Assembly (NCBI GenBank): GCA_002269645.1
Contig: NIVC01003108.1
Coordinates: 61,685-118,954 of the forward strand
Length of the DNA: 57,270 nt
Reading direction: 5' to 3'
Origin: Macrostomum lignano
Lineage: Eukaryota
Both the position numbers and the translations under genes were made by a program. Under the pieces are notes generated by a model that saw only the letters and a program-made list of their open reading frames with translations, did no database searches and was not told the DNA's origin. This document shows, one piece after another, positions 9,383 through 57,270 of this stretch. The first letter of the stretch is position 1; the number at the start of each line of letters is the position of its first letter.

Positions 9383-9440
<58 letters not shown>

Positions 9441-15960: not shown

Positions 15961-16009
15961 CTGGTTGGGGGAGGGTGGGGAGCGGATTAGCGAGGAGCGG
16001 ATTAGCGAG

Positions 16010-17153: not shown

Positions 17154-17205
17154 GCGCCGCCACCTGTGCTGACGGGCGGTCGCCAGCAGTCTTTCTACTC
17201 CTACA

Positions 17206-17254
<49 letters not shown>

Positions 17255-19163: not shown

Positions 19164-19461
19164 ACGGACGCGAGCAGATTGGACTGACCATTAAATTGCT
19201 ATAATCGGTAATGTTTGCATACGCTCGTAACAATACTGCTTATTGAGTTTTTATCAATGCGCGTCAGCTGATCAGGCTAAAATTATACGCGGCCAATAGC
19301 TATATTAGCTAGCTCGTATATTGTTTATGGCTTCTACAAATATAATTAATTATTGATGATTATTGTGCTCCAAATATCACGGGAACTCCGACACAGCCTT
19401 AAAAGCTTCCAATTTTCCCTACTGTGTATCTTGTGTGACTCGTCTGTTACGGTAAATAAGA

Positions 19462-32000: not shown

Positions 32001-32700
32001 AGACTGCAGTTCCAAAGCGACTCCTCCATATACTATAGCAATCAAGCAATCAAAGACTGAAAGATAATCTAAAAAAGTAAACTTCGGCGTTCGTCTAAAA
32101 TAGATATTTATAAAAGTTGATACGGAAAGTTGATTACCCTTAAGCTCCCCACGTCAGAATCATATCATATTTCTAAATTATACATGTACATGTAGGTCAG
32201 TTTATTGGCTCAATAAGCAGCCTCTTTGTCGACAGCCAGTTAAATTATGGGGGGGGGGATCAGCCATAATTTATAACGCGTACGACAAAAAGTACATTCA
32301 AAGAAAGAATTAGATCATAAATAAGATCAAAAAGCTTTTCCCAGAATCTCTAGTGTAGCAGCAGTTAAAATACCAATAAATCTCTATATCTATATGCTAA
32401 AATGAACCTTATTTACAATAGAAGATTCAGGAAGGAGAGAACAGCGGCCAGTGCATGAGTTTAGGAGAAGCCGGCAACGTCTCAAAGCGGCACTAAGTGG
32501 ATTTCTTTGTTCGGAAAAGGTGAGAAATTCCAATGATTGCTTTTCACTCAAAGCTTGGAGTGTTGCTGTGGCAACCAAACTAACTGGCAAAGAAGCTTAT
32601 AATCACACTGCGCACACATAGGAAATATGCATTAGGTTGGCTCAGACGAGCTTGCTTTCTACCAAGGAGCATAAGGAGGGACTACCAAACCTCTTGAGTC

Positions 32701-34627: not shown

Positions 34628-34638
34628 GTTGTACCGCT

Positions 34639-35173
<535 letters not shown>

Positions 35174-36779: not shown

Positions 36780-36900
36780 GCCAACGCAAGTGCGGCATAT
36801 GGGAACTGGGGGCGTTGCTCAGCGCAATTCGCACATTTCAACAGGTCATTCAAGTCAGTCCAGGCTTGAACCCCATTGAGCATGTTTGGGAATTCAGCGA
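36780..36900 (+). mobile_element. Possible Tc1/IS630 transposase remnant
   Basis: Peptide SPGLNPIEHVW resembles the Tc1 catalytic motif SPDLNPIEH.W; nothing else recognisable. Confidence 0.35.
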
Positions 36901-37479
36901 CGAGTTCAACAGGGTGCATGATTGTGAAGCAATTGTATGAGGGTCTGTCTGATAGTACATGCTATTGTTATTTTGATGTGCTGATGTGGTGCTTTGGCGA
37001 AGATTATCTAGGTATTCTTTATTAGTTTTTGGCAAAGCATTAGGGATAGGGTTGGACTTTAGGTACATGCATGCAGGACACGGAAATTTGGGTAGGACTT
37101 CAAAACTAGCCCTGTTCTTTGTTGGTGTTTTGTCAACCAAAATTTGGTTACTCTTCAACAACTTATACTACTTAAAGTTAGTAGCCTTTAGTCGCTTCGA
37201 ATCCGCTTCGCAAATTGACTAGGTGAGCGCATGATTGGATTACGGGAAGCTTTGTTCAAGCAGTTCTCTACCTGGTAAAGCAGCACTTGCGCTTTCTGCC
37301 ACTTCATTGGAGGCGAATCCATTTAACTCATTTCCTGACCACCCGAACAGAACAGAGAGAAGAACATTTTCTAGCCTATAGCAGCTCCAAGGCTGTTGTC
37401 GGATTTTTCTATTAAAGCTTGGAGTTCTGTTCATCACAGGTTGAGTCACAGGATTGCAAGCACAGAGCTGAACTCAGTC

Positions 37480-40400
37480 ATGAACTGCACTCTGCTGCTG
37501 GGCCTCGCCGTCTGCTGCCTGGCACTGAATAGTCTTGTCCAAGCAATCTCTGCTGATGAGGCTCTTCTAAAAGCAATGGGTCTCAAGTCCATCTACAATC
37601 GAGAGGTTCGCCCGGAGCCAGACCTGGACAATGCCAACCTCATTGACGTGTCATTCAACCTGAACAGGCTGGTTAAAGTGGTACGCTCGGAATCGAACTT
37701 CTGAAACTCTTGCCTGAATAAGGATCTTAGCTCGTACATAAACCAGATTTTTAGATTTTTAATAAAGATTTTCTTAGTTTTTTAGCACTCAAAATCCAAT
37801 ATTCTCCTTCTTTTCTGGATTTTTGCTGGAGTTTGTGCTCCTACTTGGGATCCAAAGGTCAATGACAAACAAGTCATTCATATTCATCGCAAATTCTTTT
37901 CATGCTTTTCAGGATTCCGCTGCTCAAGAAATTATGCTCCAGATGTGGTTCAACTTGGTGAGTCTTCATCCAATAGACTTAGTTGGGTAGGCTCTACAAT
38001 TCCCTCATGAAGATTTGATCGAGCGCAAAGATCTTCGCCCCAAACCCCGGCAGGAGTGGACGGACCCTCGGCTGGCCTGGTTGGGAAAATTCAACTCAAC
38101 TTTCGACAATGTGAGCTCGATATTCGTGCCGGCAGACCTGATCTGGCAGTCCGATGTCGGCTTCTTCGATCTGTGAGACCCTTCTGCATCATTCTTTAGA
38201 GAAACTTTACGAGAACCTGCTGACTTCATCATTTTTAAACAAATTTCCAAGGCCCACGGGCAGTGCATTCAGAAGGATGTACTTGGAACACTTTTAAATT
38301 ATAAAATTATCATCACCTGAAGTCGCTTGATTTAACATTTTCCAATTTTTGGATATGAAACTTTTTCAATGCATTTTGAAATGCTACTACTCATTTTACG
38401 AGTTGTCCTTGTCCGAAATTTAAAGCTTCATTCGCATTCTAGATTGGATTTCAAGCGAACATCAAGTGAGCGAGTAGTTCTTGTTCTGAAAAACAATGGC
38501 ATGGTGCAGTACTCAATCGAGGTTCTCACTCTGTCCAAGTGTGAGATGGACATGGCCGGGTTTCCCTACGACACGCAGACCTGCACTCAGCAGGTGGGCT
38601 CGGCAGTCCAGACAACGGAGACAATCAGGCTCAAGTTGGAAATTCAGAGCGAGAGGGATACTATAACTACCTATTTGGCTAAGAATACCGACTTCTGCAT
38701 TCTGAATGTGACAGCGAAACAGACGGTCGATGTTGAGTACGACAAGATCGACTTTACTATAAAGATCAAGGTGAGTTCAACTATGAAAAAGAAAGCTAAC
38801 TATCTGTTCAGTGCCCAACTGGCTGAGAATATTGGCAAGGGAATAAAAGTATTATCTAAGCCACGAATCAAAGGGCAGAACTGCAACGCGTTTGACTCTC
38901 TCGCGAAAAGTACCTGTCTGGATTCGGTTCCGTGAGCGGTCACACAAATTTTGTGTTGCTATCCGTATGCGTTCTCAAGGTTTTGTGTCCTGGCTGGCTG
39001 TGGGTCAACCGTCATATCGCCTTGATACGGCAGAAATGTTCAAAAAGCCCCGCTAACGAAGTAACGAATGCACCTCAATTAGTCAAAAGCCAAAAAGAGT
39101 CCAATGACAGTAAAAGCACGAAATCTGGCAGCAAGGTGATCGAATTTCAAGAAAATTTCCTTAAAACTCCTGAAATTTAAAAGTCACTGATGGTAACGCT
39201 ACAGAAAATGCTTACTGTGTATTTCAGCGTCGAACCACTTTCTACGTGATGAACCTCATCTTGCCCAGCATCCTCCTGCTCGCCATCTCAACTCTGGCCT
39301 TCTGCCTGCCGCCAGACTGCGGCGAGCGAATCTCGTTCAGCGTCACCATCGTGCTGTCCATGTGCGTGTTCCTGCAGCTCACTAGCAACTACATACCTGC
39401 TCAAAGCAATTCCGTGCCTCTACTCAGTGAGTGCAGCTTCAGCACTTTTTCATTTAGCATCTCTGCTCACTGTCACCCGGATGTAATTTTGCATCAGAAT
39501 AAAATTTTACCCTGAGCCAAGAGTCCTTTTTGGCAGTGATGTTTAAGCGCCGAAGGCAGGTGTTTTTTGGGGACTTGACCAGCTGAGCACCCCCAGACTA
39601 TTTACTCCCCTCACTCGAGCCCATCGCCGCGAGCACTTAATTAACCTGAGGCCTGTTTTGCCAGAGAATAAATACTTCGTGCACAGGCACAGCTACCTTC
39701 TGCTTCTCTACCTTCTGAGTGGCTAACTCCCCCTTGACCTCTGCTGTATGGCTAACTAACAGCTAATGGCAGCTAAGCAATAATCTCAAAGGTAGTGTCC
39801 CAAACTCAATGCCAGGAAACATTTCCGAACACCGAATTTCCTTTTCCGCCAGCCTACTACTGCAGCCTAGCAGTCGGCATGACGATGGTCAATGTTATAG
39901 CGAATGCGTTCGTGTTGAACTGCCACTACCGCCGGCTGACGCAGCCCCGGGTTTCCAACTGGCTGATCCGCCTGCTGTTCCTCAACCGGTTCGTAGCCCG
40001 TCGCAGGCGGCTGTTTGGCATCGATTCGGTGAGCGGTGACGCACTCAGGCCCAGCAATAGCTAAGCATTGCTGTTGGAATAGCACGGATGTGAAAAGTTC
40101 ATGAGGAATAGCTCAAATGCTACCCGATCCCTGGGGCATTGTCTGATTTATTTTTAAGCTAGCTATCTGATATGTGCAAAATCTCCTTATAGCGCACTGC
40201 ATGCGTTTGCTCCAGGCCTATGAAAATGTCAAAAGTGAAATTGTATTTTGCGTAGGAACTTTAGTTCCAAGAGGGTGCCCGCATGTGCACTGGCTAGCAG
40301 TATATATAGTAGATTTGATGTTGTTAGAAATCTACTCTTTGATGGAACAATGCGCACGATGTCTCACGTGTGTGCTTTTATAGTTACCTGAACTTTTGGG

Positions 40401-41303
40401 TACGTAGAAACGGAAAAAGATGATTTTTTCGCAGCAAAGGCCAATAAAGCGATTTAATTTGTCTATGCTAGTTAATTGTTCCAGTGGAACTCCTCCTCTG
40501 GAAGAGAAAGGGGGTGGCACTCCATCGCCAGAATTCCATTCCCTGAAATCCATCAGCCGAAATCCCATGACTTGAATCTTATCTTTCAAATCGTCTCCAA
40601 CTCCTCTATACAACCTTTCAAATACCATATCTTGTTTTCCGTGTTCGCGAAAACTTTATATTAAATGGCCCAGCTACTTAACAAATCCCATACTTTTTTG
40701 TTTGGAGTTTGAAATTGAACTTTGAGCAGCCGTTAAATAGATTTCCAACTAAAAGCCGTATCTTTTCACAATCACATGACAAAATGAGAGTTAGAAAGGC
40801 TTAATTACGCACGTATTTAAAGAGGTAGACTAGTATTGTTGCACGCACTAGGATCACCCGAAACAGTAAAAACCCGACATGGTAAATAAAGCCAGACGGC
40901 CCAACTCAGGCTTCAATCGTTTTGTTTGAGCAATCTCACGCTAGTTAACCAAACAATTTCGTTACAAGTACATGTACTTTTCAGACGAGTTGATGCCTCA
41001 GTCCTCTTTACTGATTTTCAGCGCACCAGAAAGGCCGTCAACGCTCTGGATGGCAGAGCGGAGGGCTGTCAGAAACCTCCGGGCGAGTCAGCTGAAGGCA
41101 AGGACTCGCCATTGCCGGATGCCGCTCCCAGAAGGCTCGACTCGGCTTTCCTGCATTGTCATGACAACGATTGGGATGTTGTAGTCTCAGTCACGGACAC
41201 TGTTTTCTTTCTGCTGTATTTTTTCTTGACCACGGCCATCATCGTGACTCTGGTGATAATCGAGACCAGGAACTCCAAGGTGAACTGCATCACTGGTGAC
41301 TGA
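37480..41303 (+). CDS. Divergent nicotinic-type Cys-loop receptor subunit 1; exons 37480-37680, 37913-37957, 38054-38172, 38443-38770, 39228-39426, 39853-40028, 41022-41303; 449 aa
   Basis: Signal peptide, YNREVRP, WTDPRLAW, IWQSDV, Cys-loop CEMDMAGFPYDTQTC, RRTTFYVMNLILP, LPPDCGERISFSVTIVLS, TM3, TM4; splice phases consistent. Confidence 0.92.
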
Positions 41304-41522
41304 CGTGGGGCAACTTCTCCGACGAGACAATAGAGAAACTAATGACTGACTGATGGAATGAATATTTAAGTTTGATCTATAAGTTTGTCTTCGTTTTGCA
41401 GTGCAGGAGAGAAATTCAGAAATCACTGGCGAACCTGATTACGAATATAAAGAAGATTCGTACATTGCCTATGAGCGTATAGAAAAGGTTATAGTATAAA
41501 GATGCTTACGAGCTATTTTTAT

Positions 41523-41890
41523 TAGATGCAGGGGGCTGTGTGCACCCTGGCGCACTTTAAGCGACATTGTCACACAACCGGCGTGAGGCATTGCTGCCCA
41601 TTCCGCCGACTCCCCTGAGCAGGCACACAAGCGCGGATACCTACGCAGTCATACGCACAGGCACTCACTCACACAGGAGTGTACAGCGGCCCTGACTTTA
41701 TTATCGTTAGGCATGTACACTTCATTGTGCCTTAGAGGTTGGCCCTCAAGGCCGGTTAATTGCACGTGCAGAGCCAAGCCGAGATTCCAATTTAGCCCCA
41801 AATGAATGTGACTGCACTTGGAATCGAGACTGGGCCGCTGGCACATCAGAGCGCCGCGGTCGTCCCCTGCTTACGAGCTTACGAGTGTCC
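41523..41890 (-). mobile_element. tRNA-derived SINE copy (same family as 44631-44925)
   Basis: Reverse complement matches 44631-44925 in both the head (TGTGCCAGCGGCCCAG.CTCGAT.CC) and the tail (GGCTGTGTGCACCCTGGCGCACTT...CCCATTCCGCCGACTCC.CTGAGCAGGCACACAA). Confidence 0.75.
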
Positions 41891-42815
41891 TGCAGTAGTA
41901 ACGGAGACAACCTTCATTTTTGGTTCGACCCGAGCGTCTTTGACCTCTGAGCTACTTTATTTGATTTCGCTGGCCAGCAACACGAAAGTATAAATCGGTT
42001 GCTTGGGTGAGAAATTAGTTTAAAAAATAGCAAAAAAATTGTGTATTTTTGAGGGCTAGACATGCTAAATTTGGTGTCAGGGGCGGGCTGGGGGTTAGGG
42101 ATGATCGCAATGTAGGTAGCGACCTACTCAAACTGACAAGGAAGGATACAACATCATAAGTTTGAACAGCTAAATGTAGGCATTTCGGTTGTTGGTTCGT
42201 CGCAAAGGGACATTTGGCACCGCCGGAAACATTTTTTAATGTATTCATTCATTGTTAACTTCCGGTTAGCAACCAGCCCTCACAATGCTTCCAATTCCCC
42301 CGACGAGTCGGTCCGGAAAATGCTCATGGTTTGGACGAGTATCAAGGCAAATCTGAAAGTAGCTTTATGTCGGACCTGGACGGAAATTGACTGAACTGAT
42401 TTATTTAGTTTAACTGAGTGGACAGTAGTTGTCATGAAAGGGCATTCAGGACAGAATTTCCACTGCCTCCGTAATCCCATTAACTTTATCTGTATTGTTC
42501 CTAATAACTTGGTTGAACAGTTTGAAAATCTTCCAAACATACATCTACCAATGAATCAATTTAAGGACAAAATGTTCCCAGTTGTTTTACTAGATTCCTA
42601 TTCCTAGCTCGAGCCTAACTACAAATTCAAGTACCAGTGCAAGATGAAATGTACCCAGAATGTACGCAAATGTACGAATGTACCGAAGCCCACCACGGAA
42701 TGATTGCTTGAATTTACCACTCCTCTCTCTGCGTCTGATTATTTTGAAGACAGAGCAGCTATCCAGTGAAATTGTACGATTGAAGGCAGCTGAGGAAAAA
42801 ACTCCTTTTGCATCA

Positions 42816-42829
42816 GTTGTCATGGCAAC
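42816..42829. promoter_or_regulatory. RFX X-box-like palindrome GTTGTCATGGCAAC
   Basis: One mismatch from the palindrome GTTGCCATGGCAAC; ~1.4 kb upstream of the receptor 2 ATG. Confidence 0.3.
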
Positions 42830-43477
42830 GAGAGGGTCATAGTTGCTGGTACAACGGAAAAGTTCTTCTTTGTCGTGTTCAGAAACTCATACATGTTGTT
42901 CAAGAGCAAATACAAAATTTGAGTCTTTCGACAAACGTAGCCGAAGAGATCAGGTGAGAATGCATAGGTAGGGACACACTTTAATGTTAAAAAAGTTACA
43001 ATTCATTTTTCTATAGAGCTGTATCAGACTTGTTAAAGCCTCGCTGTTTGCCATCGTCCTTGAGAAACGGAGGCTGTAGAGAACTAGGCAAATACCGCTT
43101 GTAACAGACAGTCTCACTGACATTGTCAGTAAATAAATGGGAAATAAATACGATTGAAGCCCTGTCGAAGCCCTTCGTCAGCATTTCGACAAATATCGGA
43201 GCGCTCCATCAATCGATAGGCCTAAAGTTGAGATCTACGCGGCTCATGGACCTTCGGCTTCCAGGCAAATAATAATCTTTTTATCTCCCATATCCTAAGT
43301 CTAAGTCTAAGAGAGTGCTTGAAAATGTGGCTAATCTTGATCTCAAGACAATCTTGATGTCTGGAACACTATCCGCCAAGCAAAATTTGTACTTGCACAG
43401 TGTAGATATATGCCAAGAGCAACTGTGGTTGTTGATTGCATTAAAACTCTCCTCTGACGGCAACGGCATCTCCGGCG

Positions 43478-43855
43478 GCAGCCTCAGATCGTTTGGCAGC
43501 GGCGGCGCGTTGCCTGACCGCCTGAGGGTGGCGTTGTTCCAGGCGGTGATCGAGACCGTCCTGTTGTACAACGCCGAGACCAATGCGGCACTCTATCACC
43601 GCACCGACCTGTTCCGTCCCAGCGAACTGTTGCGCCATCAGCGACTCCAGCTGGCAGGCCATCATCCGAGCCGAGTCGTACTACCCACAGCCGGTGCAGG
43701 AGGTGCTGTTGCTGACGCTGCAGACACCCTACTATCGACGGGGACAGGTGCACACTCGGCGCTTTGTTGACTGCCTGCTGTCTGATGCCGGCGCCCCGGA
43801 CACTGCCGGCGGTGCGGCCTACGTTCACGCCCAGGCCCTGAAACGCGACCTGTGA
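43478..43855 (+). mobile_element. 5'-truncated non-LTR retrotransposon (RTE-like) 3' fragment
   Basis: RLRVALFQAVIETVLLYNAET and LQLAGH.IRAE resemble the post-RT C-terminus of RTE-type LINEs; frameshifted. Confidence 0.65.
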
Positions 43856-44225
43856 CATTGTCCCACACTTTACTGGCTGACAATGTATTTTGTTATTATA
43901 GTTGTTGTTGTTGAGAGCATTGTAAAAGGGATTCAGGTTTATCTCGCTAGTGACCTCGCAAATAAAGGTCTGACAGACAATTTGTGTTGATTCCAGTCTC
44001 TTTTTGGCCTTGTTTCTCAAGTAGCATCCGTACTTTAACGGCTATAGTCACATTGTTTGAAGAAGGCAAGCAGGAGTGACAGCAAAGAGAGACCCAATGA
44101 GATCCCTTCAGACAGTGTGAGTGGGCCGCATCCTTGAAGCAGATAGTTATTCACGAAATAGTTTCTCCAACACCTTGGCTGCCAGCCAGAACTGAACAGA
44201 ATATAGCGGACTGTGACTCACTAGC

Positions 44226-45898
44226 ATGCTGTGGGCTGCACTATCAAGCTTCATCGCTCTCTTGCTCTGCCGTGCCGCAGCGGCAGCGGCTGCCTCGGCT
44301 TCTCCAGATGAGGCCTTGGAATTGGCGCTGAAACTGAAATCCGCCTACAACAAGGACGCCAGGCCGCCACCTGACAACGGTTCGGCAAACTTGGTGACCG
44401 TCTTTTTCAACCTGAATAATTTGGTTCGAGTGGTGAGCCTCCAATTTTAATGTGTTTGTGAGCCAATATCATTGCTCTGAGCATGTGGTCGAGCTTGGAT
44501 CTTTCCAACCCGCAGGACTCGGCAGCGCAGGAGATCATGCTGCAGGTCTGGTTCAGCCTGGTGAGACTTCTTGTTATTCGATGCGCAGCAATCTCGTAAT
44601 AAAGTCGAAAAATGTCTTATTAAGATTTGGGGGCCGTAGCCTAGTGGGTCTAGCGCGGTGCTCTTATGTGCCAGCGGCCCAGGCTCGATCCCTGTGCGTA
44701 TGAATGCGAACGTATCCGCGCGCTTGTGTGCCAAGGATCACTGTAGTGTACAGGACGAAAAATTCAAAGATTGCGTAATTTTAGGGGGTGCTACAGTGGT
44801 CCTTGTTGTGTGCCTGCTCAGAGGAGTCGGCGGAATGGGCAGTAATGCCTCTCGCCGGTTGTGCGACAATGTTCACCTGAAGTGCGCCAGGGTGCACACA
44901 GCCCCGAGTCCCTGCCTCTAACTAAAAAACTAAACTTATAAATATTTCATCTACGTCGGATGATACGCGACCATTTCATAGGTTAAGTGTATTAGAGCTC
45001 ACAGCAGTAAAATTTACCAACACACAAATATCTCAAGCAACTAGCATTTTTAAAGAAACAACGAGGCTTTGGATGGACGCCTATCTGCAACTGTCAAGTA
45101 TTTACGCTTTTTTCCTTCCCAGTTTTCCACAATATCCGAATCTGCATGATAAGAGTTAAAAAGTAACAAATACAAGAGTTGAGACTCTCATAGATAGCAA
45201 CAACCTTCTAACTACGAGACGATACTTGGGTAAGTGCATTAGCGCTTCCAGCGTATGTAAAAACTATCGATTTTTTCGAATAAATATCTCATGAAAGACA
45301 ATTCAATGGGTTTGCATGGCATCACGGAAGCTTGTTTACGTACTCGTACGTGCCAACACTATTCCCTGCAGTACTGGTTTGACAGCCGCTTGGTCTGGAA
45401 AGGAAAATTCAACTCCAGCTTTGACAACGTGAGCTCCATTTTCGTGCCAGCCGACCTGCTCTGGCAACCCGACGTGGCCTTTTATGACCTGTAAGTTCGT
45501 CCGTACGAACGATTGATGGCACTGATAAATGTAGAGAAGTCACTTGTAGATCACAGACACTATAGTACCTGGATAGGCCACTCAGTACATTTGAGTATAA
45601 ACTTTGAGTTGAGTATGAGATAATTAGAAGCACTTAAATGTAGTTTAGGTCAAGACTCACCCCTAGCCCCTCTCAATCTTCCGACCGCGTCTTTACACGC
45701 TTATTTACGTTTTCATTTTTTTGTCATTTTACGATATCTTTTATTTTCTATGCTTCCTAAATATAAGATATATAATATATAGTATAATTGATTACACCTG
45801 CCACAATAGGCAGATGTGCAACTGACTGCTCAGCTATTTTCAGTCATTGCTATCTGAAGGCGCGTACGGCTATTCAGTCCAAGGAAATGGGAGGGTCG

Positions 45899-45963
<65 letters not shown>

Positions 45964-48521
45964 TAATCAGAAAGGACTTTCTTAAGCTCATTAGCATCGT
46001 AATGAACAATGCATTCTAGTCTGGACCTGCGTCGAACATCCAGCGAAAAGATCGTGTTGGTTGTCAAAAGCGACGGCCTGGTGCAGTACACATCGGAGCT
46101 GCTCACCCATTCCAAGTGCGAAATGAATATGGCTGAGTTTCCTTACGACACGCAGAGCTGTCACCAGCGGGTGTCCTCGGTGGTGCACACGAACGAGACA
46201 ATCGCGTTGCGCATTAGGGAATCGAAACCCGGGGACTCGCTGACGGACTTTCTGGTCAAAAATATCGACTTCTGCATTGTGAACGTCAGTACTGTTAAGT
46301 CCATTGACGTGATCTACGATTTTGTGGAGCTCCGTGTTGATATCAAGGTTCGGACCCAGTTAGAGGTTACATTGGCCCATGAATGCTTGTTTGATGCGGT
46401 CCGTTGGTGATAGATGTCTTTAATGGTGGATGTCTTTGTGATGGATGTCTTTGTGATGGATGTCTCTGTGATGGATGTCTTTGTGATGGATGTCTCTGTG
46501 ATGGATGTCCTTGTGATGGATGTCTTTGATGCATGGATGTCTTTGTGATGGATGTCTTTGATGCATGGATGCCTTTGTGATGGATGTCTTTGTGATGGAT
46601 GTCTTTGTGATGGATGTCTTTGTGATGGATGTCTCTGTGATGGATGTCTTTGTGATGGATGTCTTTGATGCATGGATGCCTTTGTGATGGATGTCTTTGA
46701 TGCATGGATGCCTTTGTGATGGATTTCTTTGATGCATGGATGCCTTTGTGATGGATGTCTTTGTGATGGATGTCTCTGTGATGGATGTCTTTGTGATGGA
46801 TGTCTTTGATGCATGGATGCCTTTGTGATGGATGTCTTTGATGCATGGATGCCTTTGTGATGGATGTCTCTGTGATGGATGTCCTTGTGATGGATGTCTT
46901 TGATGCATGGATGCCTTTGTGATGGATGTCTTTGATGCATGGATGTCTTTGTGATGGATGTCTCTGTGATGGATGTCTCTGTGATGGATGTCTTTGTGAT
47001 GGATGTCTTTGATGCATGGATGCCTTTGTGATGGATGTCTTTGATGCATGGATGTCTTTGTGATGGATGTCTCTGTGATGGATGTCTTTGTGATGGATTT
47101 CTTTGATGCATAACAAGAGGCTGATGGAGTGATCATGCATGCAGATATTTAGATAGCATAGCACTGTACTAGAGCATCTGTGGGCTAGCGAAAAGATGTC
47201 ACATAATGTAGGACTTACTGAGAATTCCAGAATTTTCCATATCTAGCTCAAGGTTCAAATTTTAATGAGAATAATTTTGCATTCATTCTTAACTCCCGAA
47301 AATTATTGACAGCGGAAAACTACGTTTTACATGATGAACCTAATTCTGCCCAGCTTCCTACTGCTCGCCATCTCAACTCTGGCCTTCTGTCTCCCACCGG
47401 AATGTGGAGAGAGATTGTCCCTGAGCATCACCATCGTGCTGTCCATGTGCGTGTTTCTGCAGCTGACTGGAAACTTCACGCCAACACAGGGAGACTCGGT
47501 GCCTCTTCTAAGTGAGTTCTTCGTTTTGCCGCAGTAGAAATGTGTCAAGTGTCATGGGGCTCATGGAGGGCTCATAGGGCAGTTGCTAAGATTTCAAAGG
47601 CTCATAGGGAACTGCAGGAATTCTTGGGCTCATGGAGAATCGATGAAATGCCACGGTTCATGGGGGGAATTGCTGAAATTCTGTGGCTCATGTGTTCAGA
47701 TGCTTTGAGCCAAAGCCCATAGGGGATCTGATCTTTTAGGCTAGATATTCAGGGCGGATGCTTTTTTGGTTCAAACATCATTTTCCTTAAAAGATTGACA
47801 ATAGTGACTGTACAAGGTTAAAAGCCACACGTAGTTTATTCAAAAAAAGATTCTTTCCTTTGTTGCCTCCCCAACGGGGGGGGCAGACGAAATTGCTAGT
47901 TGCAGTCTAAATCTTCTTAAAGAACAGCAGCAGAAAGTGTGTTGCTATTAGAAGAAATTGCTTGCAACATTGCAGCCTGGTACTTCAGCCTCGCGGTGCT
48001 TCTGACCATGGCTAACCTGGTTGCCAATGCCTTCGTTCTGAGCTGCCACTTTGAGCAGTTTTCTGAGAACGCTCGAGTCCCCGGCCGTCTCACTCGGCTG
48101 CTGTTTCTCAATAGGCTCTTCTGCGGCCATCCGTCTCGTACAGAATCTCCGTCGGCACGAAATTCCAATGTGGTGATCGAGCCAACTGCTGCTGAAGTGC
48201 GTGACCAACAATCATTCACTGTGGATTGTTGATTAGCTTTTGCACAGGTGCATGCATTCACATATTTCATTCCAACTCTAGAACACGTACTCCGACGGAA
48301 CGGAACTTCGCGTCATCTCCCAACGAAGGTTAGGAAAAGCCGAATCTGAAACAACGATGCAACACCCAAGTTTCAAAAGTGACTGGAGCGCCGTTGTGAC
48401 CGCCGCTGACCGCTGCTTTTTTGCCTTCTTTTTCTCGTTGACAATGTCGCTAGCGCTGGCGATTGCGATTCTGGATGCCATGAACTCCAAGACCAGCTGC
48501 ATCGTGGGCAAGAATAATTAA
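44226..48521 (+). CDS. Divergent nicotinic-type Cys-loop receptor subunit 2; exons 44226-44432, 44516-44560, 45372-45490, 46020-46347, 47313-47511, 47976-48196, 48282-48521; 452 aa
   Basis: Same exon sizes (45/119/328/199) as subunit 1; CEMNMAEFPYDTQSC, LPPECGERLSLSITIVLS, DWSAVVTAADRCFF. Confidence 0.92.
44631..44925 (+). mobile_element. tRNA-derived SINE copy in receptor 2 intron 2
   Basis: A-box TAGCCTAGTGG, B-box-like GGCTCGATCCC, body shared with 41523-41890, A-rich end. Confidence 0.75.
45900..45960 (+). repeat. (CA)n microsatellite
   Basis: Direct observation. Confidence 0.99.
46425..47110 (+). repeat. 15-bp based minisatellite (TGTGATGGATGTCTT, with TGATGCATGGATG variants) in receptor 2 intron 4
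   Basis: Tandem units. Confidence 0.95.
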
Positions 48522-49328
48522 GAAACTATGGTTCTTGCTAACAAATAGTTTGTTGACTGTCCTCTGAGTCCAGGGTTGCTGTCGGATTCAATCAAGGATG
48601 TTGATTGTATGGTAATAGTTTCTGCCTAAATAATAAGTCCGGCTCCGGGAATAAAAAAGCCACTTTTTGACTCGACAGCTTTGAAAATGTCTTGGCTAAA
48701 CATTTTGCTCATTTTTCAGACAGATTACCGCATCAGATATCCTTTATCAGTGAAAAGCTCTAAAGTATGATTTTCAAAAGACTGTTGAAGTCGCAGTTAG
48801 TAGCAGACGTGTGGTTTTGCACACTTGGTTCTTTCTACTGAAGCCGAGAGCATAAAGTAGAGCGGAACCATGGAAATGGACTTGCTAAACATGTTAGATG
48901 GACACTCTATGTGATAGGAGCAGAGAGAGTAGATCAATGTTTGAGCACCCAAAAGCCTGGAAAACAGTTTCTCTTTTCATACATGCAGTTATGTTGGCCT
49001 CACGCCAATAGTTGGCTTGATCGATACGTGGGTCAGGTTTCTCGCGTGAGCACTATGCGATAAGCAGAGCCGTGAATAAAATAGAGTCCCAGCCATTGTC
49101 TTTCACTCCTGGCTAATTCTCGCTCAGCGCGTCAAATTGATTTGTTCCTGCTAGAATTGATCTTAATTTAATTGAGACCCAATTGGCTACTAGTGCTCTT
49201 AACCTTGCAAAATCGACGGGAAAAGCCTATCACGATCGGGTCTAAGTTGAAAGGAAAGATGCATAAAACGAGTGACGTTAACCCCAGAGTGTCTACACAA
49301 ACATAGCAGCTCAGTCAGACTGAAAACA

Positions 49329-50228
49329 ATGTCATACCAGACTCCCCAAGACTTCATCGTTGCCATTCTGTACTTTGTATCCTTCACTGCCGCTGCGACC
49401 TCGCCTGACGAAGCTCTGTCATTGGCACTGGGCTTGAAGACCAGCTACAACAAGGACGCGCGTCCTCCGCCCGATGCTGGCTCAGCGAATCGAATCGGCG
49501 TTTTCTTTAACCTGAACAACCTCGCCAGGGTGGTCAGATTGATCGCTTTTAATCGTCCTTCATCGGAATAATTGGTTATAGTTACCTGTAGTTACAGCCA
49601 AAAATCAAGGCACACCCCATGGGGTACATCAGCCCCGATTTACTCATTGGCAAGCATGCATATAGCACACTCTGCGCGTTGGATGCTGTCCCTTATGGTC
49701 GTGAATCGCACGACAGGCTCCTGCAGGCCAATTTTTCTGTACGGACCGCAAATAATTAAGCCGCTGTCTGTAAGACACAACAAAATTGTATCCAAGACCA
49801 TTGATGACCGATTTCACTGCCCACAGAACTCAGCGACAGGGGAGATGACTCTGCAAGTCTGGTTTAATTTGGTATGACTAATTTGCAATGAATAAGTTTC
49901 TGTTAAACTTTCCCACCCCGAGGTTGCAGCAGATGTACACATAAAGTGGCCAAGGTAAACTCAACAATTCTGGGTAATTAGAGAAAATTTGAATAAAATG
50001 CTCCTCTAGTTTGGCGTTCCGTCGGACCTCCAGCGACAAAATTGTTCTAGTTGTCGAAAACAACGGCTGGGTGTCGCACACTGCGGAGTTTCTGACCCAG
50101 TCCAAGTGCGCAATGAATATGGCCAGGTTTCCCTACGACACGCAGAGCTGTCGCCAGCTCGTGTCCTCAGTGGTGCACACGAGTGACACCGCTAAGCTGT
50201 TCATTCGTCCAACAAAATCAGCGGACTC
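49329..50228 (+). pseudogene. Cys-loop receptor subunit 3, disrupted: exons 49329-49532, 49827-49871, exon 3 absent, exon 4 from 50010 truncated at 50228 by the Polinton
   Basis: YNKDARPPPD, TLQVWFNL, CAMNMARFPYDTQSC; homology to the paralog stops at GCG GAC TC. Confidence 0.88.
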
Positions 50229-50238
50229 AGTAGTATAT

Positions 50239-50477
50239 ACGATACAAAATAGCCAGCAAACCGTTCTCACCATTGCAAACAATTTAACCCTTTATCAGTG
50301 TGAAATGACTTGTTTTCCCTTCATTTTCGCTCGTCTTCACTTCGCTCAACTCGCTTCGCTCATCCTCGCTTCATTTCGGTCAAACAAGTCATTTCACACT
50401 TACAACGATTAATTCTCTTTGAATGGTGAGAACACGCTCTCGTCGAACGCTTTGGTTTGCTGGCTATTTTGTATCGT
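50239..50477. other. Nested fold-back at the element terminus
   Basis: Perfect inverted arms 50239-50262/50454-50477 (24 bp), 50263-50274/50422-50433 (12 bp) and 50297-50315/50382-50400 (19 bp). Confidence 0.93.
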
Positions 50478-50610
50478 CAACGCTTCCAACTCTCCCCAAT
50501 ACACACAAACTCTCTATAACCCGTCGCACGCGCCGCAGGCGCGAAGGGTCTGGAAGTTTTGGTAGAGAAAGAATAGAAGCTATTTATAGTCAGCTCACCC
50601 ACCCACTCAA

Positions 50611-50675
50611 CATTCCATTTAGACCAGATTTTTCGTTTTGGTTTTCGTTTTCAAAAATCTGGTCTAAATGGAATG
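50611..50675. other. 23-bp perfect inverted repeat with 19-nt loop
   Basis: CATTCCATTTAGACCAGATTTTT / AAAAATCTGGTCTAAATGGAATG. Confidence 0.95.
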
Positions 50676-50714
50676 CAGACAATCTTTTTTCTGTTACTAA
50701 AAATAGAACAAAAA

Positions 50715-51113
50715 ATGACACACGTTACTAATATGCAAAATCTGAATGAATTGCAGGTAGGAGATCCAGTTGAATACCGAGGTGAGGGTCTTTTTGATGT
50801 GGTTGGAACAGCAGCAAATTTTGTTAAAGACAATATGGGTCTTTTAGGGCAAGCAGGCTCCGCAGCAGGTTCTATAACAAATGCTGTAAAAGGAGGAATT
50901 GAAGCAGCTAGAGCAGCAGAAGAACTAAAGAAATTGAGAGAATTTAACGACACCCTCTCACAAATAAATGCAATAAAAGATTTAAAGCTGGCACAAGCCG
51001 CACAACCAACAGAAACCCCTACGAAAAGCACTCCAATAAGTAATAAAGATATTCAGGATTTTAATAAAATGCTAACCACCATTAAAGGCGGAAAAGGATT
51101 AAAAAAATTTTAA
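50715..51113 (+). CDS. Polinton small ORF with Gly/Ala-rich amphipathic segment (putative virion core or membrane-active protein)
   Basis: AAAAATG start context; RGEGLFDVVGTAANFVKDNMGLLGQAGSAAGSITNAVKGG; function inferred only. Confidence 0.65.
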   Translation: MTHVTNMQNLNELQVGDPVEYRGEGLFDVVGTAANFVKDNMGLLGQAGSAAGSITNAVKGGIEAARAAEELKKLREFNDTLSQINAIKDLKLAQAAQPTETPTKSTPISNKDIQDFNKMLTTIKGGKGLKKF

Positions 51114-51123
51114 CAATATAAAA

Positions 51124-52098
51124 ATGGACACGGATAATGAACGGCTACATTTTATAGGAGAAATTGTAGATACTTTAAATCTAGATGATAATAAACATAG
51201 CCACACAATGTTAAAAAGATTGGATCGTTTAGGTAAAAAACTTGACTACGACATCGATACATTTAAACTTGCTGCAAAATATGCACAAGAAGGAAGGCCA
51301 ATATCCTTTAAGAATCGTGGTAGAAATTATAGGCTGACAGAGTCCGATGTAAAATTTTTATTGGAGACTCACACTAAAAAGGACGGTGGTTTACTACCTA
51401 TTTTACCAATTCTTTTAGGCCTCGGAGCAGCCGGAGCAGCCGGTTTAGCAGGCAAAAGAATTCATGATAACCGAAAACAGTTAGCAGAATTAAAGGCAAA
51501 ACAGGGAGGCATATTACCACTTGCAACTTTGTTACCAATAATTTTTGCAGGAATAGGAGCAGCTGGAGGAGTTGCTGGTGGAGCAGCTGGAATTGCAAAA
51601 GCAGTAAATGACAAAAAAGCTGCGGATGAAAAAGCTAAAAGAGAGGCCGAATTTCAAAGACAGCAAATAACGCAGGATGCTCAATTCAAACAGAAACTTA
51701 TTGACACCATTAATAGTAGTTCAGCAACAGCAGAGCAAAAAAGAAATGCAGAAGCTAGGTTAGCAGCCGGAAAAGGTTTACTGTTAAATGGCAGCGGCTT
51801 GGTACTAAAAGGAACAACCCAAGGAAGTGGAGTTGTAGCAGATAAACTACAGGAATTTGGTCAAACTTTAGAAAAAACGGGTGAGAAAGCTAAAGGGTTT
51901 TTTGATAATATTGGAGCTAATTTTAGGCCGGCAGTTCAGAAGATTTTTACTAAGTTAGGAAAAGATTTTAACATAATTGAAAAACACGACGGAAGCGGAT
52001 TATATCTCGAAATGAGACCAAAAGCAGGTTCAGGAATTTTCTTAAATTCAAACGTTATGGGCAATGGACTACTGTTACCAAAAGCAGATCTCGAATAG
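51124..52098 (+). CDS. Adenovirus pX/mu-like core protein precursor, 324 aa
   Basis: Two GG-[LI]LP hydrophobic blocks (DGGLLPILPILLGLGAAG; QGGILPLATLLPIIFAGIGAAGGVAGGAAGIAKAV) resembling the adenoviral pX C-terminus GGILPLLIPLIAAAIGA. Confidence 0.65.
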   Translation: MDTDNERLHFIGEIVDTLNLDDNKHSHTMLKRLDRLGKKLDYDIDTFKLAAKYAQEGRPISFKNRGRNYRLTESDVKFLLETHTKKDGGLLPILPILLGLGAAGAAGLAGKRIHDNRKQLAELKAKQGGILPLATLLPIIFAGIGAAGGVAGGAAGIAKAVNDKKAADEKAKREAEFQRQQITQDAQFKQKLIDTINSSSATAEQKRNAEARLAAGKGLLLNGSGLVLKGTTQGSGVVADKLQEFGQTLEKTGEKAKGFFDNIGANFRPAVQKIFTKLGKDFNIIEKHDGSGLYLEMRPKAGSGIFLNSNVMGNGLLLPKADLE

Positions 52099-52182
52099 GC
52101 TCCTGGGAGGTGGGTCAGGACGCTAAAAACATAAAATTAAAAAACCAATAATTCAAACATTATATAAATTATATTCTATAAA

Positions 52183-55100
52183 ATGGAACAAAGATTGACC
52201 CCAGATCAGATTCGACAACTTCTTGCAAATGAGCGCCAACAGTTCAATCTATTACAAAGACAGATTGAACAAATTGAACGGCGCCAAAGACAGCAACTTC
52301 GGCGAAGAGCAAGAGAAAGACAGAGAGAAAGGCAGAGAGAAAGAGAAATACAAGAACAACAAATAAACGAATTAGCAAATAGTATAAGGGCAGAAGAAGC
52401 TTTTAAGCGTTTAGTAGAAAAGGTTGAATATGAAAAAAGAATAGCAGAATTAGAAAAAAACCAAAAGAAACAAACACGTCGGAAAACTAAGAATAAATCG
52501 GATGAAAAACCATTAGAAGAGTTTATTAGGGTTTATCGATTTGAACCAATGCAGAAGGTGCTAGATTTTATTGAAACCCAACTTTCAAACGGATATAGTG
52601 TTGAAATTACTAATGCTAGTGTACAATATTTTTATAACGATAGCGGCGATGATCGCGAAGAGATTAATCAATACTTAGCAACATTTTATAATATAAAACA
52701 GTTTCAAGCTTGGATTAAGCATTTGGTAGAAAACTATAACATGAATTTAAGTATGTTTTCTGGAAGACTTAAAATGACACCAAATGAAATTACAATTAAA
52801 CACGAAAGGTCAAAGCAGGGTATGGGAACAAATGTCATGTGTGAAATTGCAGAGTATAAAGATGAGTACTGTTACATACCTAGTGATGGAAATTGTTTCT
52901 ATAAGTGCGTTAAATTTATATATGGTGATAAAGCCCCACGCAAAGACGAATATGGTGCTTGGTTGTACGACTCAAGAACCCAAAGAGGTTTAATGACAAA
53001 TTCAAGAATTGGAAGATTCAATGAATATTTTAATCTTAATATAGGGCTGTACAACACCAAAAATCGCGGCATTGAACCAAAGTCTCAAAGAGGGATTCAC
53101 CACGATTGGTTATTAATAAATTATTTCCACACACCCGATTACCACATTGGGCATTATTGTCTTATATCAAATAAACAACGAGGAATCGCCCTCGAACGGA
53201 TAAAAGACAATTATAAAGTAGTGTTTAAAAACCCAACACCCGAAAATGTTAAGGAGTTAAAAATATTCAACACACCCACAAATCCCAATAAATCAAATGT
53301 ATATATATTTGATTTTGAAACATATTTAAATTATAATCAACAAGCATGCCCGTATGCGGTTGGTCTTTTAAATTATAATGACTTTTCTAATAATTGTAAC
53401 GAAACCCCAGAGGAAATAAAGAAACTAACTAAGATCTTGATATCAGATCGCGGTTGTGATTTTCAAACAGACGGAGCTAAACCGACTGCGTTAGAAAAAT
53501 GTTTAAATACCTTGGTACAGTTAGGTCAAAAAAGATTGTTTTGATCGCACACAACTCATCCCGCTTTGATTCATACATACCACTATTTTGTAATATAAAA
53601 CCAATTAAAATTCTCAAAACCCCAAGAGGAATATTATCAATCACTTTTGTAAACGATTACGCGTCAAAAGAGGTTAGTGCGTTTATAAATAAAGATAAGA
53701 AGAAGAATCACAAGGATTCGAAACAAACCATTACGATGCTTTGTTCATATCAACACGCTTCAATGAGTTTAAAAAAGTTTTGCTCATCAATGACAATTAG
53801 AGAGGATTTGCGAAAAACCTCAATGGTTCATGACATTACCGAGCACGATTATCTAGAACGCATAGACGAATGGTATGAATATTTACAATTTGATCTTATT
53901 TCTTTATGTGCCTGTATTCATAAATATAACGAAATAGCATATGAAATTGGAGGAATGACAATGTTTGATACCTTACGTGTTCAAGTTTAACATTAAAATG
54001 TTGGTTTAAAGATTTTGTTAGAGTTGAAGACAAAATGAAACAATATCTAAAGACAGAAGAAAAAACTAATTACATTAAAAAAGTTGAAGAAATAATATCT
54101 CCGTTGAAAATAGAAGATTATTTTGACTTAAGCAATCTTGAAAAAGCGAAATACCAAACACTATTAAGAAAAGAATTTTCAGTTCACTCTCATACCAATC
54201 CTTATATAAGAAGGTTTATGCGGGACGCAGTCAAAGGAGGTAGAGTATTTGCACTAATAAATAAATACGAAAGTGATTGTTTTCAAACAATAGTAGACGT
54301 TGTAAAAGACCATTTAAAAACACCAACAAGCGACCCATGCGAGGTTATATCATCTTATCTCAAAAGCGATATGGAAGAAAAAAAGAAAAGCAATTAAACT
54401 AAAAATCAATATCAATTGGGTACCGTATCAGATTGTTTAATGAATTTTGATGGGGTCTCATTGTACCCATCCGCCATGTCTGATAAGGATAGCGAATATC
54501 CAAGAGCAGAAACAGCCAGGGTGTTTGATATAAGCGAGGAAAAAGATTTCTTATCACAATTTAATTCACAAACCTTTCGACCAAAAACAGCGGTTTTAAA
54601 GATTATGTATGAGAATCCTAACACCGTTTTTCTTCAACATCTCCCATCGAAAGATAAAGAGAAATTTTATAATCCGGAAACAAAAGCAAACGAAACAAAA
54701 ACATTAAATAGGTTTAAAACGGAAAGGTAATTGACACCTTATGTTCCGTAGATATACAAGAAATTGTAAGAATGGGTGGAAAAATATTAAAGATATATAG
54801 TGGAATTGTATATGAAAAAAATTACGATTTCTCTCCGTTTCAGAATTATATTACAAGCCTTTTTGAAAGGAGAAAAGTATTTAAAAAAGAAAATAACGAG
54901 GCAGGTTCTGAATTGGTAAAAACACTATTAAATTCATTATATGGCAAAACAGTTCAAAGAGACATTACTTTCACAACACATCTCTGGAATTTGCAAACAT
55001 TAAAAACAGAATACTATGACACAATCAAATCATATGAGAAAATATGTGACGATTTATATTATGTTGAAAAAAATAAAGACACGCAAGAATATGTAGATGA

Positions 55101-55779
55101 GGAAGAGGATTGTCCTATAACAAGCCTTTGTCCAGCACAATTAGGAATATTTATCTTAGCTCATTCAAGAAGGATCATGAATAATTTTATCACCTCTATA
55201 GACGGCTCAAAGACTCCAGAAATTTATTACGGCGATACAGATTCGTTATATATACATAAAAAATTGGGACACATTAAATAAAAACGGGCATGTTGGAAAT
55301 AATTTAAGTCAAGGAAAAAATGATTATGGAGAGGGTGGAATTATATTCGGTTATTTTATCGCTCCTAAAATTAAATATTGTCTTTTATTGAAAGACGATT
55401 TTATTATGGAAGAGAAAAAAACATTTAAAGGATGTGCAAATGATAAGATTAATTTTGCATCGTTTAAAACGTTATATGATGGGCAGTCAATAAAAGTAAA
55501 TAATAATGCCCCATGGAAACGATCGTTTGAAGGAGGCATAATAATCCCCAAAGTGGATCAACAATATCAAAAACATATACCTCTACGATAAACACATTTA
55601 AAAGAGAAAAACCGGATAAAAACGGAGTTATGAAACCATTCTTTAAAAACTATTTTGATGACAAACCACAACACGAAAATTCAATTGCATATTATAACAG
55701 TTTACTATTTGATGTTGATTATAATTGTTTTGAGTTTGATATTGATGAATTAGCACTTGAAAAAAACCAAAGCATGTAA
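52183..55779 (+). CDS. polB: Protein-primed family B DNA polymerase with N-terminal extension and OTU-like protease; split by ~6 single-base frameshifts
   Basis: ExoI YIFDFETY, ExoII IAHNSSRFDSY, ExoIII YLQFD, AVKGGRV, motif A FDGVSLYPSAM, motif B KTLLNSLYGKTVQ, motif C YYGDTDSLYI, FIAPKIKY. Confidence 0.95.
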
Positions 55780-56094
55780 TTGTTTGACCATATCATTAAC
55801 TTCAATTTCATATATTATTGAAGGCCAATTGTCCTCGCAGTCGGCAGGGTAACTTAAACATTCCTTTATTTTTTTCCTAAGTTTTTTTATTCGTCTAACC
55901 AATCTATCTATTTCAATTTCAATTACTGTTTCAGCATAATCAATTGCTTTTTGTATAAAACGCTTTCTTTTATCCAAGTCGTATCGGATAGGAAACATAT
56001 CGTCCCCATAATCACTATAAAACATAGTATTTATTTTTTTATTAATATAATTAAGTTCACGCTCTTTAGTGATAAGGATAATTTGTATCTCCAT
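55750..56094 (-). CDS. Polinton hypothetical protein (likely start at 56094)
   Basis: ORF with TATAAGAAAATG start context; overlaps the polB end convergently. Confidence 0.55.
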   Translation of the reverse strand: MEIQIILITKERELNYINKKINTMFYSDYGDDMFPIRYDLDKRKRFIQKAIDYAETVIEIEIDRLVRRIKKLRKKIKECLSYPADCEDNWPSIIYEIEVNDMVKQLHALVFFKC

Positions 56095-56183
56095 TTTCTT
56101 ATAAAAAAATTTAGTCATCTTCGTCAGTCTCCCAAACGGAAGCTAATTTTACAGTCCTGTCACTCTTTTTATTTTTGTTTGTT

Positions 56184-56441
56184 TTATTTTAAATTGCAAC
56201 CCACCCTCGTGCTGTATTTTATAATGAACGCTTTAGGTTTATTAATAACTAAAACTGGAAAATTTTTAACATCATTCCCACTTAGACATAGAACTGTATG
56301 TGAATCCAATTGTAAAAATATCGATTGAAGTCCAATAAATTTAACCTGTCTCAAACATATAATATTATATTCTTTATTCTCCAACATATTGGGGGTGACA
56401 TAATTAATCACATTAGAATCGGTTTTCAACCAACTTTCCAT
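56184..56441 (-). CDS. Polinton hypothetical protein (likely start at 56441)
   Basis: ORF with TTAAAAATG start context. Confidence 0.45.
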   Translation of the reverse strand: MESWLKTDSNVINYVTPNMLENKEYNIICLRQVKFIGLQSIFLQLDSHTVLCLSGNDVKNFPVLVINKPKAFIIKYSTRVGCNLK

Positions 56442-56466
56442 TTTTAATCTAAAAAAATAACAAAAA

Positions 56467-56928
56467 ATGAAAGACATTTACGAATGTAAAAAATGTAACG
56501 TGACTATGCATAGAGCTCAAACAGCAAGCGGAGATATATATCATATGTGCTATTCATGTTCTAAAATATATCAATTTGAAAAAACAAAAAAGATTGAAAA
56601 TTCATATTACTATTTTAAAAACACAATATTAAGAAATCTTACAAGAGACATTTCTCATCCAATTTTAATTCCCGGAAATAATGTTTATTTATATAACAAC
56701 TTTTTCAATTTAAATAAAGGAAAGGGATTAAGTTCGAAAGACTCCGAAAGGATTTTAATTTTAGTTGGATATTATTTTAATTTTCTTATTCGAGAGAATA
56801 CAAAGTTTATAAGGATAGGTAACATACCTAACGAAATGTTACTGAAAAGTCATTGGAATTTTTATGTATTGATAAAAAATTTAAACCTAGAATTACAAGA
56901 GAATTACCACTTTGGGAAGAATATATAA
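56467..56928 (+). CDS. Polinton hypothetical protein with N-terminal CxxC..CxxC zinc-ribbon-like motif
   Basis: YECKKC...CYSCSK; AAAAAATG start. Confidence 0.6.
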   Translation: MKDIYECKKCNVTMHRAQTASGDIYHMCYSCSKIYQFEKTKKIENSYYYFKNTILRNLTRDISHPILIPGNNVYLYNNFFNLNKGKGLSSKDSERILILVGYYFNFLIRENTKFIRIGNIPNEMLLKSHWNFYVLIKNLNLELQENYHFGKNI

Positions 56929-56962
56929 CGTATGCGTTAGAAAAATTAAACAACTTGAAGTT

Positions 56963-57166
56963 CTACAGCAGCGCTACCTGATCGGGGGCTTTGTACCCCA
57001 TAGCCATAGTTTCTGGTTTGTATTCAATAGTTTCTATCGGCGGAGCTTTGGGTTTATCGAGTCTCAACTCTTTTAACTCCATATCGGTAAAAGTTTCAAC
57101 ATCTAAAATTCTATTTCGATCTTTTAAATATTTTTTCATATAATTCAACCGCCGTTGATAACTCAT
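56963..57166 (-). CDS. Polinton small hypothetical protein
   Basis: 67-aa ORF, charged and Pro-rich. Confidence 0.4.
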   Translation of the reverse strand: MSYQRRLNYMKKYLKDRNRILDVETFTDMELKELRLDKPKAPPIETIEYKPETMAMGYKAPDQVALL

Positions 57167-57270
57167 GAATTGTTATCTCTCCATCATCCAATATTTTTGC
57201 ACATATAAATACAACTGATTTTTATATTGTTTGCAATATCTCTTAATGATTTATATTTATCCTTTCGTTT

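Follow-up and report, generated by a model that had tools for sequence, protein, structure and literature searches.

Layout and identity of the array

We analysed a 57,270-nt stretch of the Macrostomum lignano genome (assembly GCA_002269645.1, contig NIVC01003108.1, positions 61,685 to 118,954 of the forward strand), hereafter the window, which carries a tandem array of genes for Cys-loop ligand-gated ion channel (LGIC) subunits. The array lies on the + strand and consists of two intact genes, G1 and G2, and one broken copy, G3 (Table 1), with gaps of 2.9 kb between G1 and G2 and 0.8 kb between G2 and G3. A tblastn search of the whole window with G1 as the query identified these three as the sole LGIC-like sequences present. 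Coding blocks were located by means of six-frame open reading frames (ORFs) and frame translations, after which splice sites were checked. The region is intron-bearing and eukaryotic, with short + strand coding blocks that recur three times. Both intact genes comprise seven exons; all of their introns are GT-AG, the intron phases are identical between the two genes, and exons 2-5 are equal-sized (45, 119, 328 and 199 nt). Their stop-free translations are 449 aa (G1) and 452 aa (G2) in length and share 54% identity.

Table 1. Positions of the receptor genes and neighbouring features, numbered from the first nucleotide of the window.
Feature	Position	Strand	Basis or remarks
G1 gene, intact	37480..41303	+	Splice sites, phases, Pfam ligand-binding and transmembrane domains, public models
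G1 exons	37480-37680, 37913-37957, 38054-38172, 38443-38770, 39228-39426, 39853-40028, 41022-41303 (stop included)	+
G1 45-nt micro-exon, loop D region 'DSAAQEIMLQMWFNL'	37913..37957	+	Equivalents: G2 44516-44560, G3 49827-49871
G1 exon 4: Cys-loop (CEMDMAGFPYDTQTC), loop B (GSAVQT), loop F, beta9, loop C (TAKQTVDVEY), beta10	38443..38770	+	G2 equivalent 46020-46347
G1 exon 5: TM1 and TM2 with 'PPDCGERISFSVTIVLSMCVFLQL'	39228..39426	+	G2 equivalent 47313-47511
G2 gene, intact paralog	44226..48521	+	Splice sites, public model P0001
G2 exons	44226-44432, 44516-44560, 45372-45490, 46020-46347, 47313-47511, 47976-48196, 48282-48521 (stop included)	+
15-bp minisatellite GTGATGGATGTCTTT, ~45 copies, in G2 intron 4	46407..47105	.	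Strand not assigned
G3 truncated copy	49329..50250 (end approximate)	+	tblastn and DNA comparison with G2
Fibrinogen C-terminal-domain gene, directly upstream of G1	32701-34627	+	Pfam Fibrinogen_C, E 1e-15
Low-GC (~30-40%) virus-like or Maverick/Polinton-like element fragment	50260..57270	+	GC/skew change, ORFs, Pfam
Element ORFs	50673-51113, 51124-52098, 52183-53544, 53499-53990, 54035-54397, 54416-54730, 54772-55281, 56467-56928	+

Both proteins contain the Pfam domains Neur_chan_LBD and Neur_chan_memb, with scores of 112 and 80 bits in G1 and 119 and 61 bits in G2, all of them over the curated cut-offs (Neur_chan_LBD E-values of 3e-32 and 2e-34, respectively). The best-matching PDB sequences were near-tied at E ~1e-41 to 1e-40 and included human nicotinic acetylcholine receptor (nAChR) subunits alpha4 and beta4 as well as 5-HT3A (~2e-40). 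An AlphaFold2 (AF2) model of G1, which covers exons 1-6 only, has a pLDDT of 87.7 and contains the ectodomain beta-sandwich and transmembrane (TM) helices that characterise Cys-loop pentameric channels, with TM1-3 visible. TM4 is encoded by exon 7, outside the model, and aligns weakly with alpha4 M4 in HMMER. The top Foldseek matches to the model were muscle nAChR, alpha7, alpha4beta2 and 5-HT3A (TM-score ~0.75), and nAChR and 5-HT3A could not be separated by this fold search. Within the Cys-loop ligand-gated channels, the subunits of G1, G2 and G3 belong to the cationic nicotinic/5-HT3 branch.

Of G3 there remain exon 1 (49329-49532), the 45-nt exon 2 (49827-49871), an exon 3 remnant of ~14 nt (~49952-49965) and roughly two thirds of exon 4, which starts at 50010. 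Similarity to G2, to which G3 is nearer than to G1, stops at 50182 in DNA and at ~50250 in protein. The copy lacks loop C and the TM exons and, because exon 3 has been lost, the reading frame is shifted between exons 2 and 4. An earlier note on this DNA, made from the sequence alone, had described three head-to-tail paralogs with matching exon sizes, one of them already dead. The order, the equal sizes of exons 2-5 in G1 and G2 and the death of G3 all hold, but the third paralog is only a fragment.

Public gene models agree with these structures in part. P0001 (UniRef A0A1I8GYC2, M. lignano) corresponds to G2 with 98.5% identity. Its cluster also holds P0159 (PAA53260.1, BOX15_Mlig027167g2), which is G1 exons 1-6 with the exon 6 donor read through, and P0160 (A0A1I8GYM8), a 1593-aa chimera in which G1 and G2 are fused with the fibrinogen-domain gene upstream and with a transposon-like stretch. 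Between them P0159 and P0160 independently use the exon junctions given here, including that from exon 6 to exon 7. The public names are restricted to "Neur_chan_LBD domain-containing protein" or "hypothetical protein", and no paper dealing specifically with these genes, with nicotinic receptors of M. lignano or with expression data was found in a literature search. Errors are common in the public models P0001-P0004, P0007-P0009, P0160 and P0163: several lack the micro-exon, P0001 has a mis-spliced exon 3, and LGIC units are fused to one another, to the fibrinogen-domain gene or to a C-type lectin (P0009). Moreover, P0001 and P0160 take as coding a group of ORFs between G1 and G2 (43315-43855) that has no Pfam match and by eye resembles a retrotransposon tail; this is probably an annotation artefact. 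On the minus strand, the minisatellite in G2 intron 4 also creates three overlapping ORFs of 238-265 aa, which are spurious.

A contig look-up of P0159 led to a second public copy of the locus (NIVC01003108.1 25142-47722, reversed), whilst the same look-up with P0001 gave no contig. This copy is 98.8-99.5% identical to positions 27658-45945 of the window. It lacks the equivalent of 40812-42258, and thus the last exon of G1, and past a (CA)n microsatellite in G2 intron 3 (window 45900-45961) it continues into unrelated, ORF-free sequence with no G2 exons 4-7. Either it represents a degraded or structural allele or homeolog, or repeats have caused an assembly artefact.

Binding-site residues and pore

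Residues were called from a HMMER alignment to human alpha4, a table of the binding loops and alignments of the family. The Cys-loop is kept in both intact genes as C-x13-C with FPYD (CEMDMAGFPYDTQTC in G1 and CEMNMAEFPYDTQSC in G2). Opposite the alpha4 loop B 'GSWTYD', G1 reads 'GSAVQT' and G2 'SSVVHT'; the position of the loop B Trp is occupied by Ala in G1, by Val in G2 and by Ile, Gln or other residues in the paralogs. At loop C, alpha4 'YECCAEIY' is matched in G1 by 'QTVDVE.Y', with zero Cys, and the vicinal Cys-Cys (YxCC) is absent from loop C of G1, G2 and every family member examined. Both hallmarks of an alpha-type subunit, the loop C Cys-Cys and the loop B Trp, are missing from G1 and G2, as the earlier note had read them. 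Its description of loop C as short needs more care: counted by eye from beta9 'E(W/F)' to the pre-M1 'RR' the loop is 5 residues shorter than in alpha4, and the loop C window in the table of loops holds 3 residues fewer than in a beta2-type protein, so that it is shorter than both but only modestly. In the G1 model it forms a tight hairpin with a 4-residue turn, DVEY, between beta9 (206-217) and beta10 (222-232).

The loop D Trp is present in G1 ('MWFNL') and G2 ('VWFSL'), as is a loop C Tyr. At loop A, G2 has the Tyr and G1 a Phe. The beta6 signature of nAChRs, 'WxPPAIYKSxC', is replaced by 'YSIEVLTLSKC' and the 'PPAI' is gone. Judged from these residues, the principal-face acetylcholine (ACh) box is dismantled in G1 and G2, and neither subunit would be able to bind ACh on its own principal face.

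The placement of loops F and C depends on the aligner. MAFFT set 'DFCI' opposite alpha4 'YECC', whereas HMMER set 'DFCILNV' opposite the beta9 'EWVIVDA'. The MAFFT placement was rejected in favour of that of HMMER, with which the strand positions of the AF2 model are consistent. Two further conserved features of the family are a Cys within beta9, '(D/E)FC(I/V)', and a motif in the tail after TM4, 'NS(K/R)xxC(I)'.

The pore follows the cationic pattern. TM2 reads 'GERISFSVTIVLSMCVFLQL' and shares with cationic channels a Glu at -1', a Leu at 9' and a Val at 13'; 'CGER' precedes it in G1 in the alignment to alpha4. The stretch 'CGERISFSVTIVLSMCVFLQL' shows the features of the cation branch; GER and Leu 9' occur in all family members and there is no Pro-Ala-Arg anion motif. 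A Gln at 16' ('VFLQL') is peculiar to the family, and the 20' position is uncharged. The earlier statement that the Cys-loop and a cation-type GER-TM2 are kept was accurate, and channels built from G1 or G2 would be expected to select for cations. More broadly, the predicted proteins keep the parts for folding, assembly, gating and cation conduction, namely a signal peptide, the FPYD Cys-loop, TM1-TM4 and the pore residues.

Two narrower assignments were considered and dropped. An anion-selective channel was rejected since no PAR motif lies ahead of TM2. 5-HT3A is about as good a match to G1 as are the nAChRs, both in sequence and in structure, and its beta6 strand, too, is not known to carry the 'PP' motif. 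In 5-HT3A the loop B Trp (W184, PMC9977066) is highly conserved, in contrast to the G1/G2 family, from which it is absent, and a specific 5-HT3 assignment was rejected on that ground.

Extent, age and possible ligands of the family

A profile made from four M. lignano paralogs in public databases was run against a set of 1.84 billion representative proteins. Long fused models hold 2-5 LGIC units and their sums make the raw ranking misleading; scores were therefore recomputed per unit. Only M. lignano proteins (P0001-4, P0007, P0008, P0009 and P0011) exceed 290 bits per unit, and the next tier, at 175 bits or less, consists of generic nicotinic-like proteins such as the "alpha-9/10-like" proteins of Lingula and Pecten. 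An initial word-indexed protein search likewise returned matches that were all from M. lignano. Clustering of the M. lignano units in hand at 90% identity leaves ~10-13 distinct core paralogs, which is a minimum for the size of the family. Units stand side by side in the fused models, with three in P0007, three in P0008, two in P0163 and two in P0002, which implies at least 4-5 tandem arrays.

A neighbour-joining (NJ) tree was built on the 150 best profile hits (167 units, 316 columns, 200 bootstraps). Nine core units are monophyletic with a bootstrap of 0.945, falling to 0.885 when the M. lignano proteins P0011 and P0045 are added, of which P0045 still carries the loop B Trp. No sister group of this clade is supported in the tree. 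All sequences outside the clade, human alpha4 among them, share ~30% identity with G1. Human alpha4 itself falls in a separate clade of five with two beta2-type vertebrate proteins, P0112 and P0117, the latter of which scores 788 bits against PDB beta2, and with P0082 and P0139. The earlier note had proposed a lineage-specific expansion and had named a grouping with ordinary non-alpha subunits as a result that would speak against its reading; in this limited tree no such grouping was seen, and the per-unit scores, the tandem arrays and the bootstrap value all agree with such an expansion. Together they support the view that G1, G2 and G3 belong to a lineage-restricted, tandemly expanded family without the ACh principal site.

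DNA similarity among the copies is limited to exons and the introns are unalignable. By the Nei-Gojobori method, G1 and G2 differ with pS 0.70, which is saturated, and dN 0.40 (0.14 over TM1-3), and G3 and G2 with pS 0.69 and dN 0.26. Saturated synonymous sites and unalignable introns indicate that the duplications are old. The birth-and-death turnover suggested in the earlier note is a fair description, but the turnover is not recent. The intron-rich structure has been kept, which points to tandem duplication at the DNA level; vertebrate nAChR and 5-HT3 genes have a 45-nt exon in the corresponding place. Purifying selection has acted on both G1 and G2. Conservation is very uneven along the protein: mean pairwise identity among paralogs is 0.87 in TM2 and 0.68 over TM1-3, and 0.37 in the ectodomain, 0.24 in loop F, 0.20 in loop B and 0.14 in loop C. 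A near-frozen pore together with hypervariable binding loops is the pattern that would be expected of receptors differing in ligand, although an orthosteric site freed from constraint would produce it too.

Comparable families are known. Massive tandem expansions of divergent nicotinic-like genes have been documented in spiralians (molluscs and annelids; Jiao et al. 2019, PMC6896357), in a survey whose text does not mention flatworms. Like the G1/G2 family, these expansions consist of cationic nicotinic-type subunits that are arranged in tandem, highly divergent, devoid of alpha signatures (the loop C Cys-Cys) and orphan with respect to agonist. However, they number dozens to hundreds of genes, and the molluscan ones are reported to be largely intronless retrocopies (PMC6896357), whereas the M. 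lignano family keeps ancestral intron-rich genes and the 45-nt exon. Alpo4 of Alvinella, an orphan nACh-like receptor without alpha signatures that has been studied structurally (PMC10338036), retains the aromatic box including the loop B Trp, unlike the G1/G2 family. The family is a flatworm-restricted addition to the already documented orphan nicotinic-like expansions of spiralians.

The cephalopod chemotactile receptors (CRs; van Giesen 2020, Allard 2023, Kang 2023, reviewed in PMC11526382) are also orphan-type nACh-like proteins without the signature motifs. They share with the G1/G2 family an nAChR descent, the loss of ACh-binding residues, a cation-type pore, expansion within one lineage and variable pocket residues. 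They differ in their sensory expression and gating by hydrophobic ligands, the flatworm family being known here from sequence and predicted structure. No PDB chain described as a chemotactile receptor occurred among the 60 best matches by sequence or the 50 structural matches listed. On taxonomy, orthology between the flatworm family and the cephalopod CR clade is very unlikely, and the likeness is one of analogy only, as are the new ligands and the chemosensory role that the earlier note had suggested.

We hypothesise that the channels of this family are most likely gated by an agonist other than ACh, with a specificity that varies from paralog to paralog, and would give this a probability of about 0.55. 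The subunits would form channels, either homomeric or between paralogs, which a non-ACh agonist would gate at a remodelled interface pocket, and the paralogs would differ in ligand or partner specificity. Such differences are probable because loops B, C and F are hypervariable and the pore is nearly invariant. Several points weigh against this. The hypervariable loops may instead reflect relaxed constraint at the orthosteric site. Loss of the Trp and the Cys-Cys is equally seen in ordinary non-alpha subunits with a structural or complementary role, and with the loop D Trp and loop C Tyr kept, G1 and G2 could give a complementary face to an alpha-like partner. Moreover, the tree is distance-based and drawn from a biased sample in which few references are labelled, none of them as a cephalopod CR or another flatworm sequence, and the apparent restriction to one species may mean restriction to Macrostomorpha, as the databases may lack other macrostomids.

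The main rival reading, conceivable if unlikely, is that G1 and G2 are structural or complementary non-alpha subunits that co-assemble with alpha-type M. lignano subunits in ordinary ACh-gated channels. Non-alpha subunits are defined by the lack of both the loop B Trp and the Cys-Cys, and those of muscle nAChRs are likewise not known to carry the loop B Trp. The earlier note had taken this double loss as the mark of a non-ACh receptor; the loss is real, but it is also typical of ordinary non-alpha subunits. Vertebrate non-alpha subunits (beta2/beta4 and muscle beta/delta/gamma/epsilon) have, in common with G1 and G2, no vicinal Cys-Cys, a loop C shorter than that of alpha subunits, a retained loop D Trp and a GE(K/R)-type TM2, and the preserved loop C Tyr and the canonical cationic pore and gating elements would also suit a partner subunit. 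However, the family has ~30% identity to the vertebrate non-alpha subunits over conserved columns, does not join the alpha4/beta2-type clade in the NJ tree, has lost the beta6 'PPAI', carries a Gln at TM2 16' and resembles 5-HT3A about as much as it does nAChRs. Some ten or more paralogs with hypervariable loops F and C would also be unusual for mere partners.

By analogy with the cephalopod CRs, this free-living flatworm may independently have converted channels of the nicotinic type into a small set of peripheral chemoreceptors, or into sensors of cues other than neurotransmitters, although this seems improbable. In its more specific form, likewise doubtful, the channels would be convergent with the cephalopod CRs, would operate in epidermal or ciliated sensory cells and would be tuned, paralog by paralog, to different environmental chemicals. 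The set of CR features is shared, from nAChR descent, loss of the ACh motifs and a cationic pore to lineage expansion and a variable pocket. Yet the family is small at ~10-13 members, its duplicates are old and under purifying selection, CR chains are missing from the structural and sequence matches described above, and most orphan spiralian nACh-like genes are without a demonstrated sensory role (PMC6896357, PMC10338036). It is highly improbable that G1 and G2 are instead decaying relics of a burst of duplication, that is, unexpressed pseudogenes-in-waiting. G3 is dead, the second public copy of the locus is without the last exon of G1 and exons 4-7 of G2, and transposon-like and virus-like insertions lie around the genes. 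Against decay, G1 and G2 both retain a full ORF and splice sites that fit the consensus, their dN/dS lies well under 1 even though dS is saturated, the paralogs share 87% identity in TM2, and the deviant copy breaks exactly at the (CA)n microsatellite, which suggests misassembly.

For now the family adds a further uncharacterised clade to the diversity already recorded among nicotinic-like receptors in spiralians. If it is gated by a non-ACh cue, as we favour, it would add a flatworm case to the repeated conversion of neurotransmitter receptors to other cues, and would do so in an organism tractable for de-orphanising such channels. Were the chemosensory proposal true, M. lignano would be a second animal lineage convergent with the cephalopod chemotactile receptors, and one open to RNAi and transgenesis. 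Divergent LGICs found only in flatworms are also relevant to efforts to find a flatworm-specific channel pharmacology.

Surroundings of the array

Downstream, GC content and strand skew change at ~50200-50260, where a virus-like or Maverick/Polinton-like element adjoins the truncated G3 and runs past the end of the window. It encodes a protein-primed family-B DNA polymerase, identified by a Pfam DNA_pol_B_2 match at 54772-55278 (E 2e-12) and by motifs Exo I, Exo II, A, B and C seen by eye. The polymerase is split over five ORFs in three frames by at least three frameshifts and one in-frame stop, with breaks near 53.5, 54.0, 54.4 and 54.75 kb; these reflect either decay of the copy or indel errors of long-read sequencing. 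A 324-aa ORF of the element shows a weak Adeno_PX match (51124-52095), under the cut-off, and the first polymerase ORF contains a 'DGNCF' motif like that of OTU proteases. No further copy of the low-GC element was found elsewhere in the window.

Upstream of G1, the fibrinogen-domain gene is followed by a long (GTCT/CTGT)n-type microsatellite at ~34.4-35.2 kb. Further upstream lie large, near-identical duplicated blocks (~6700-19200 and 13400-25400), which contain ORF pairs of 438 aa (10032-11348 and 17847-19163) and 176 aa (13403-13933 and 22834-23364). Strongly purine-skewed microsatellite tracts accompany these blocks at 6.7-9.3, 15.6-17.2 and 26.2-27.2 kb, and the duplicated segments also carry amidohydrolase/dihydropyrimidinase-like exons on the minus strand.

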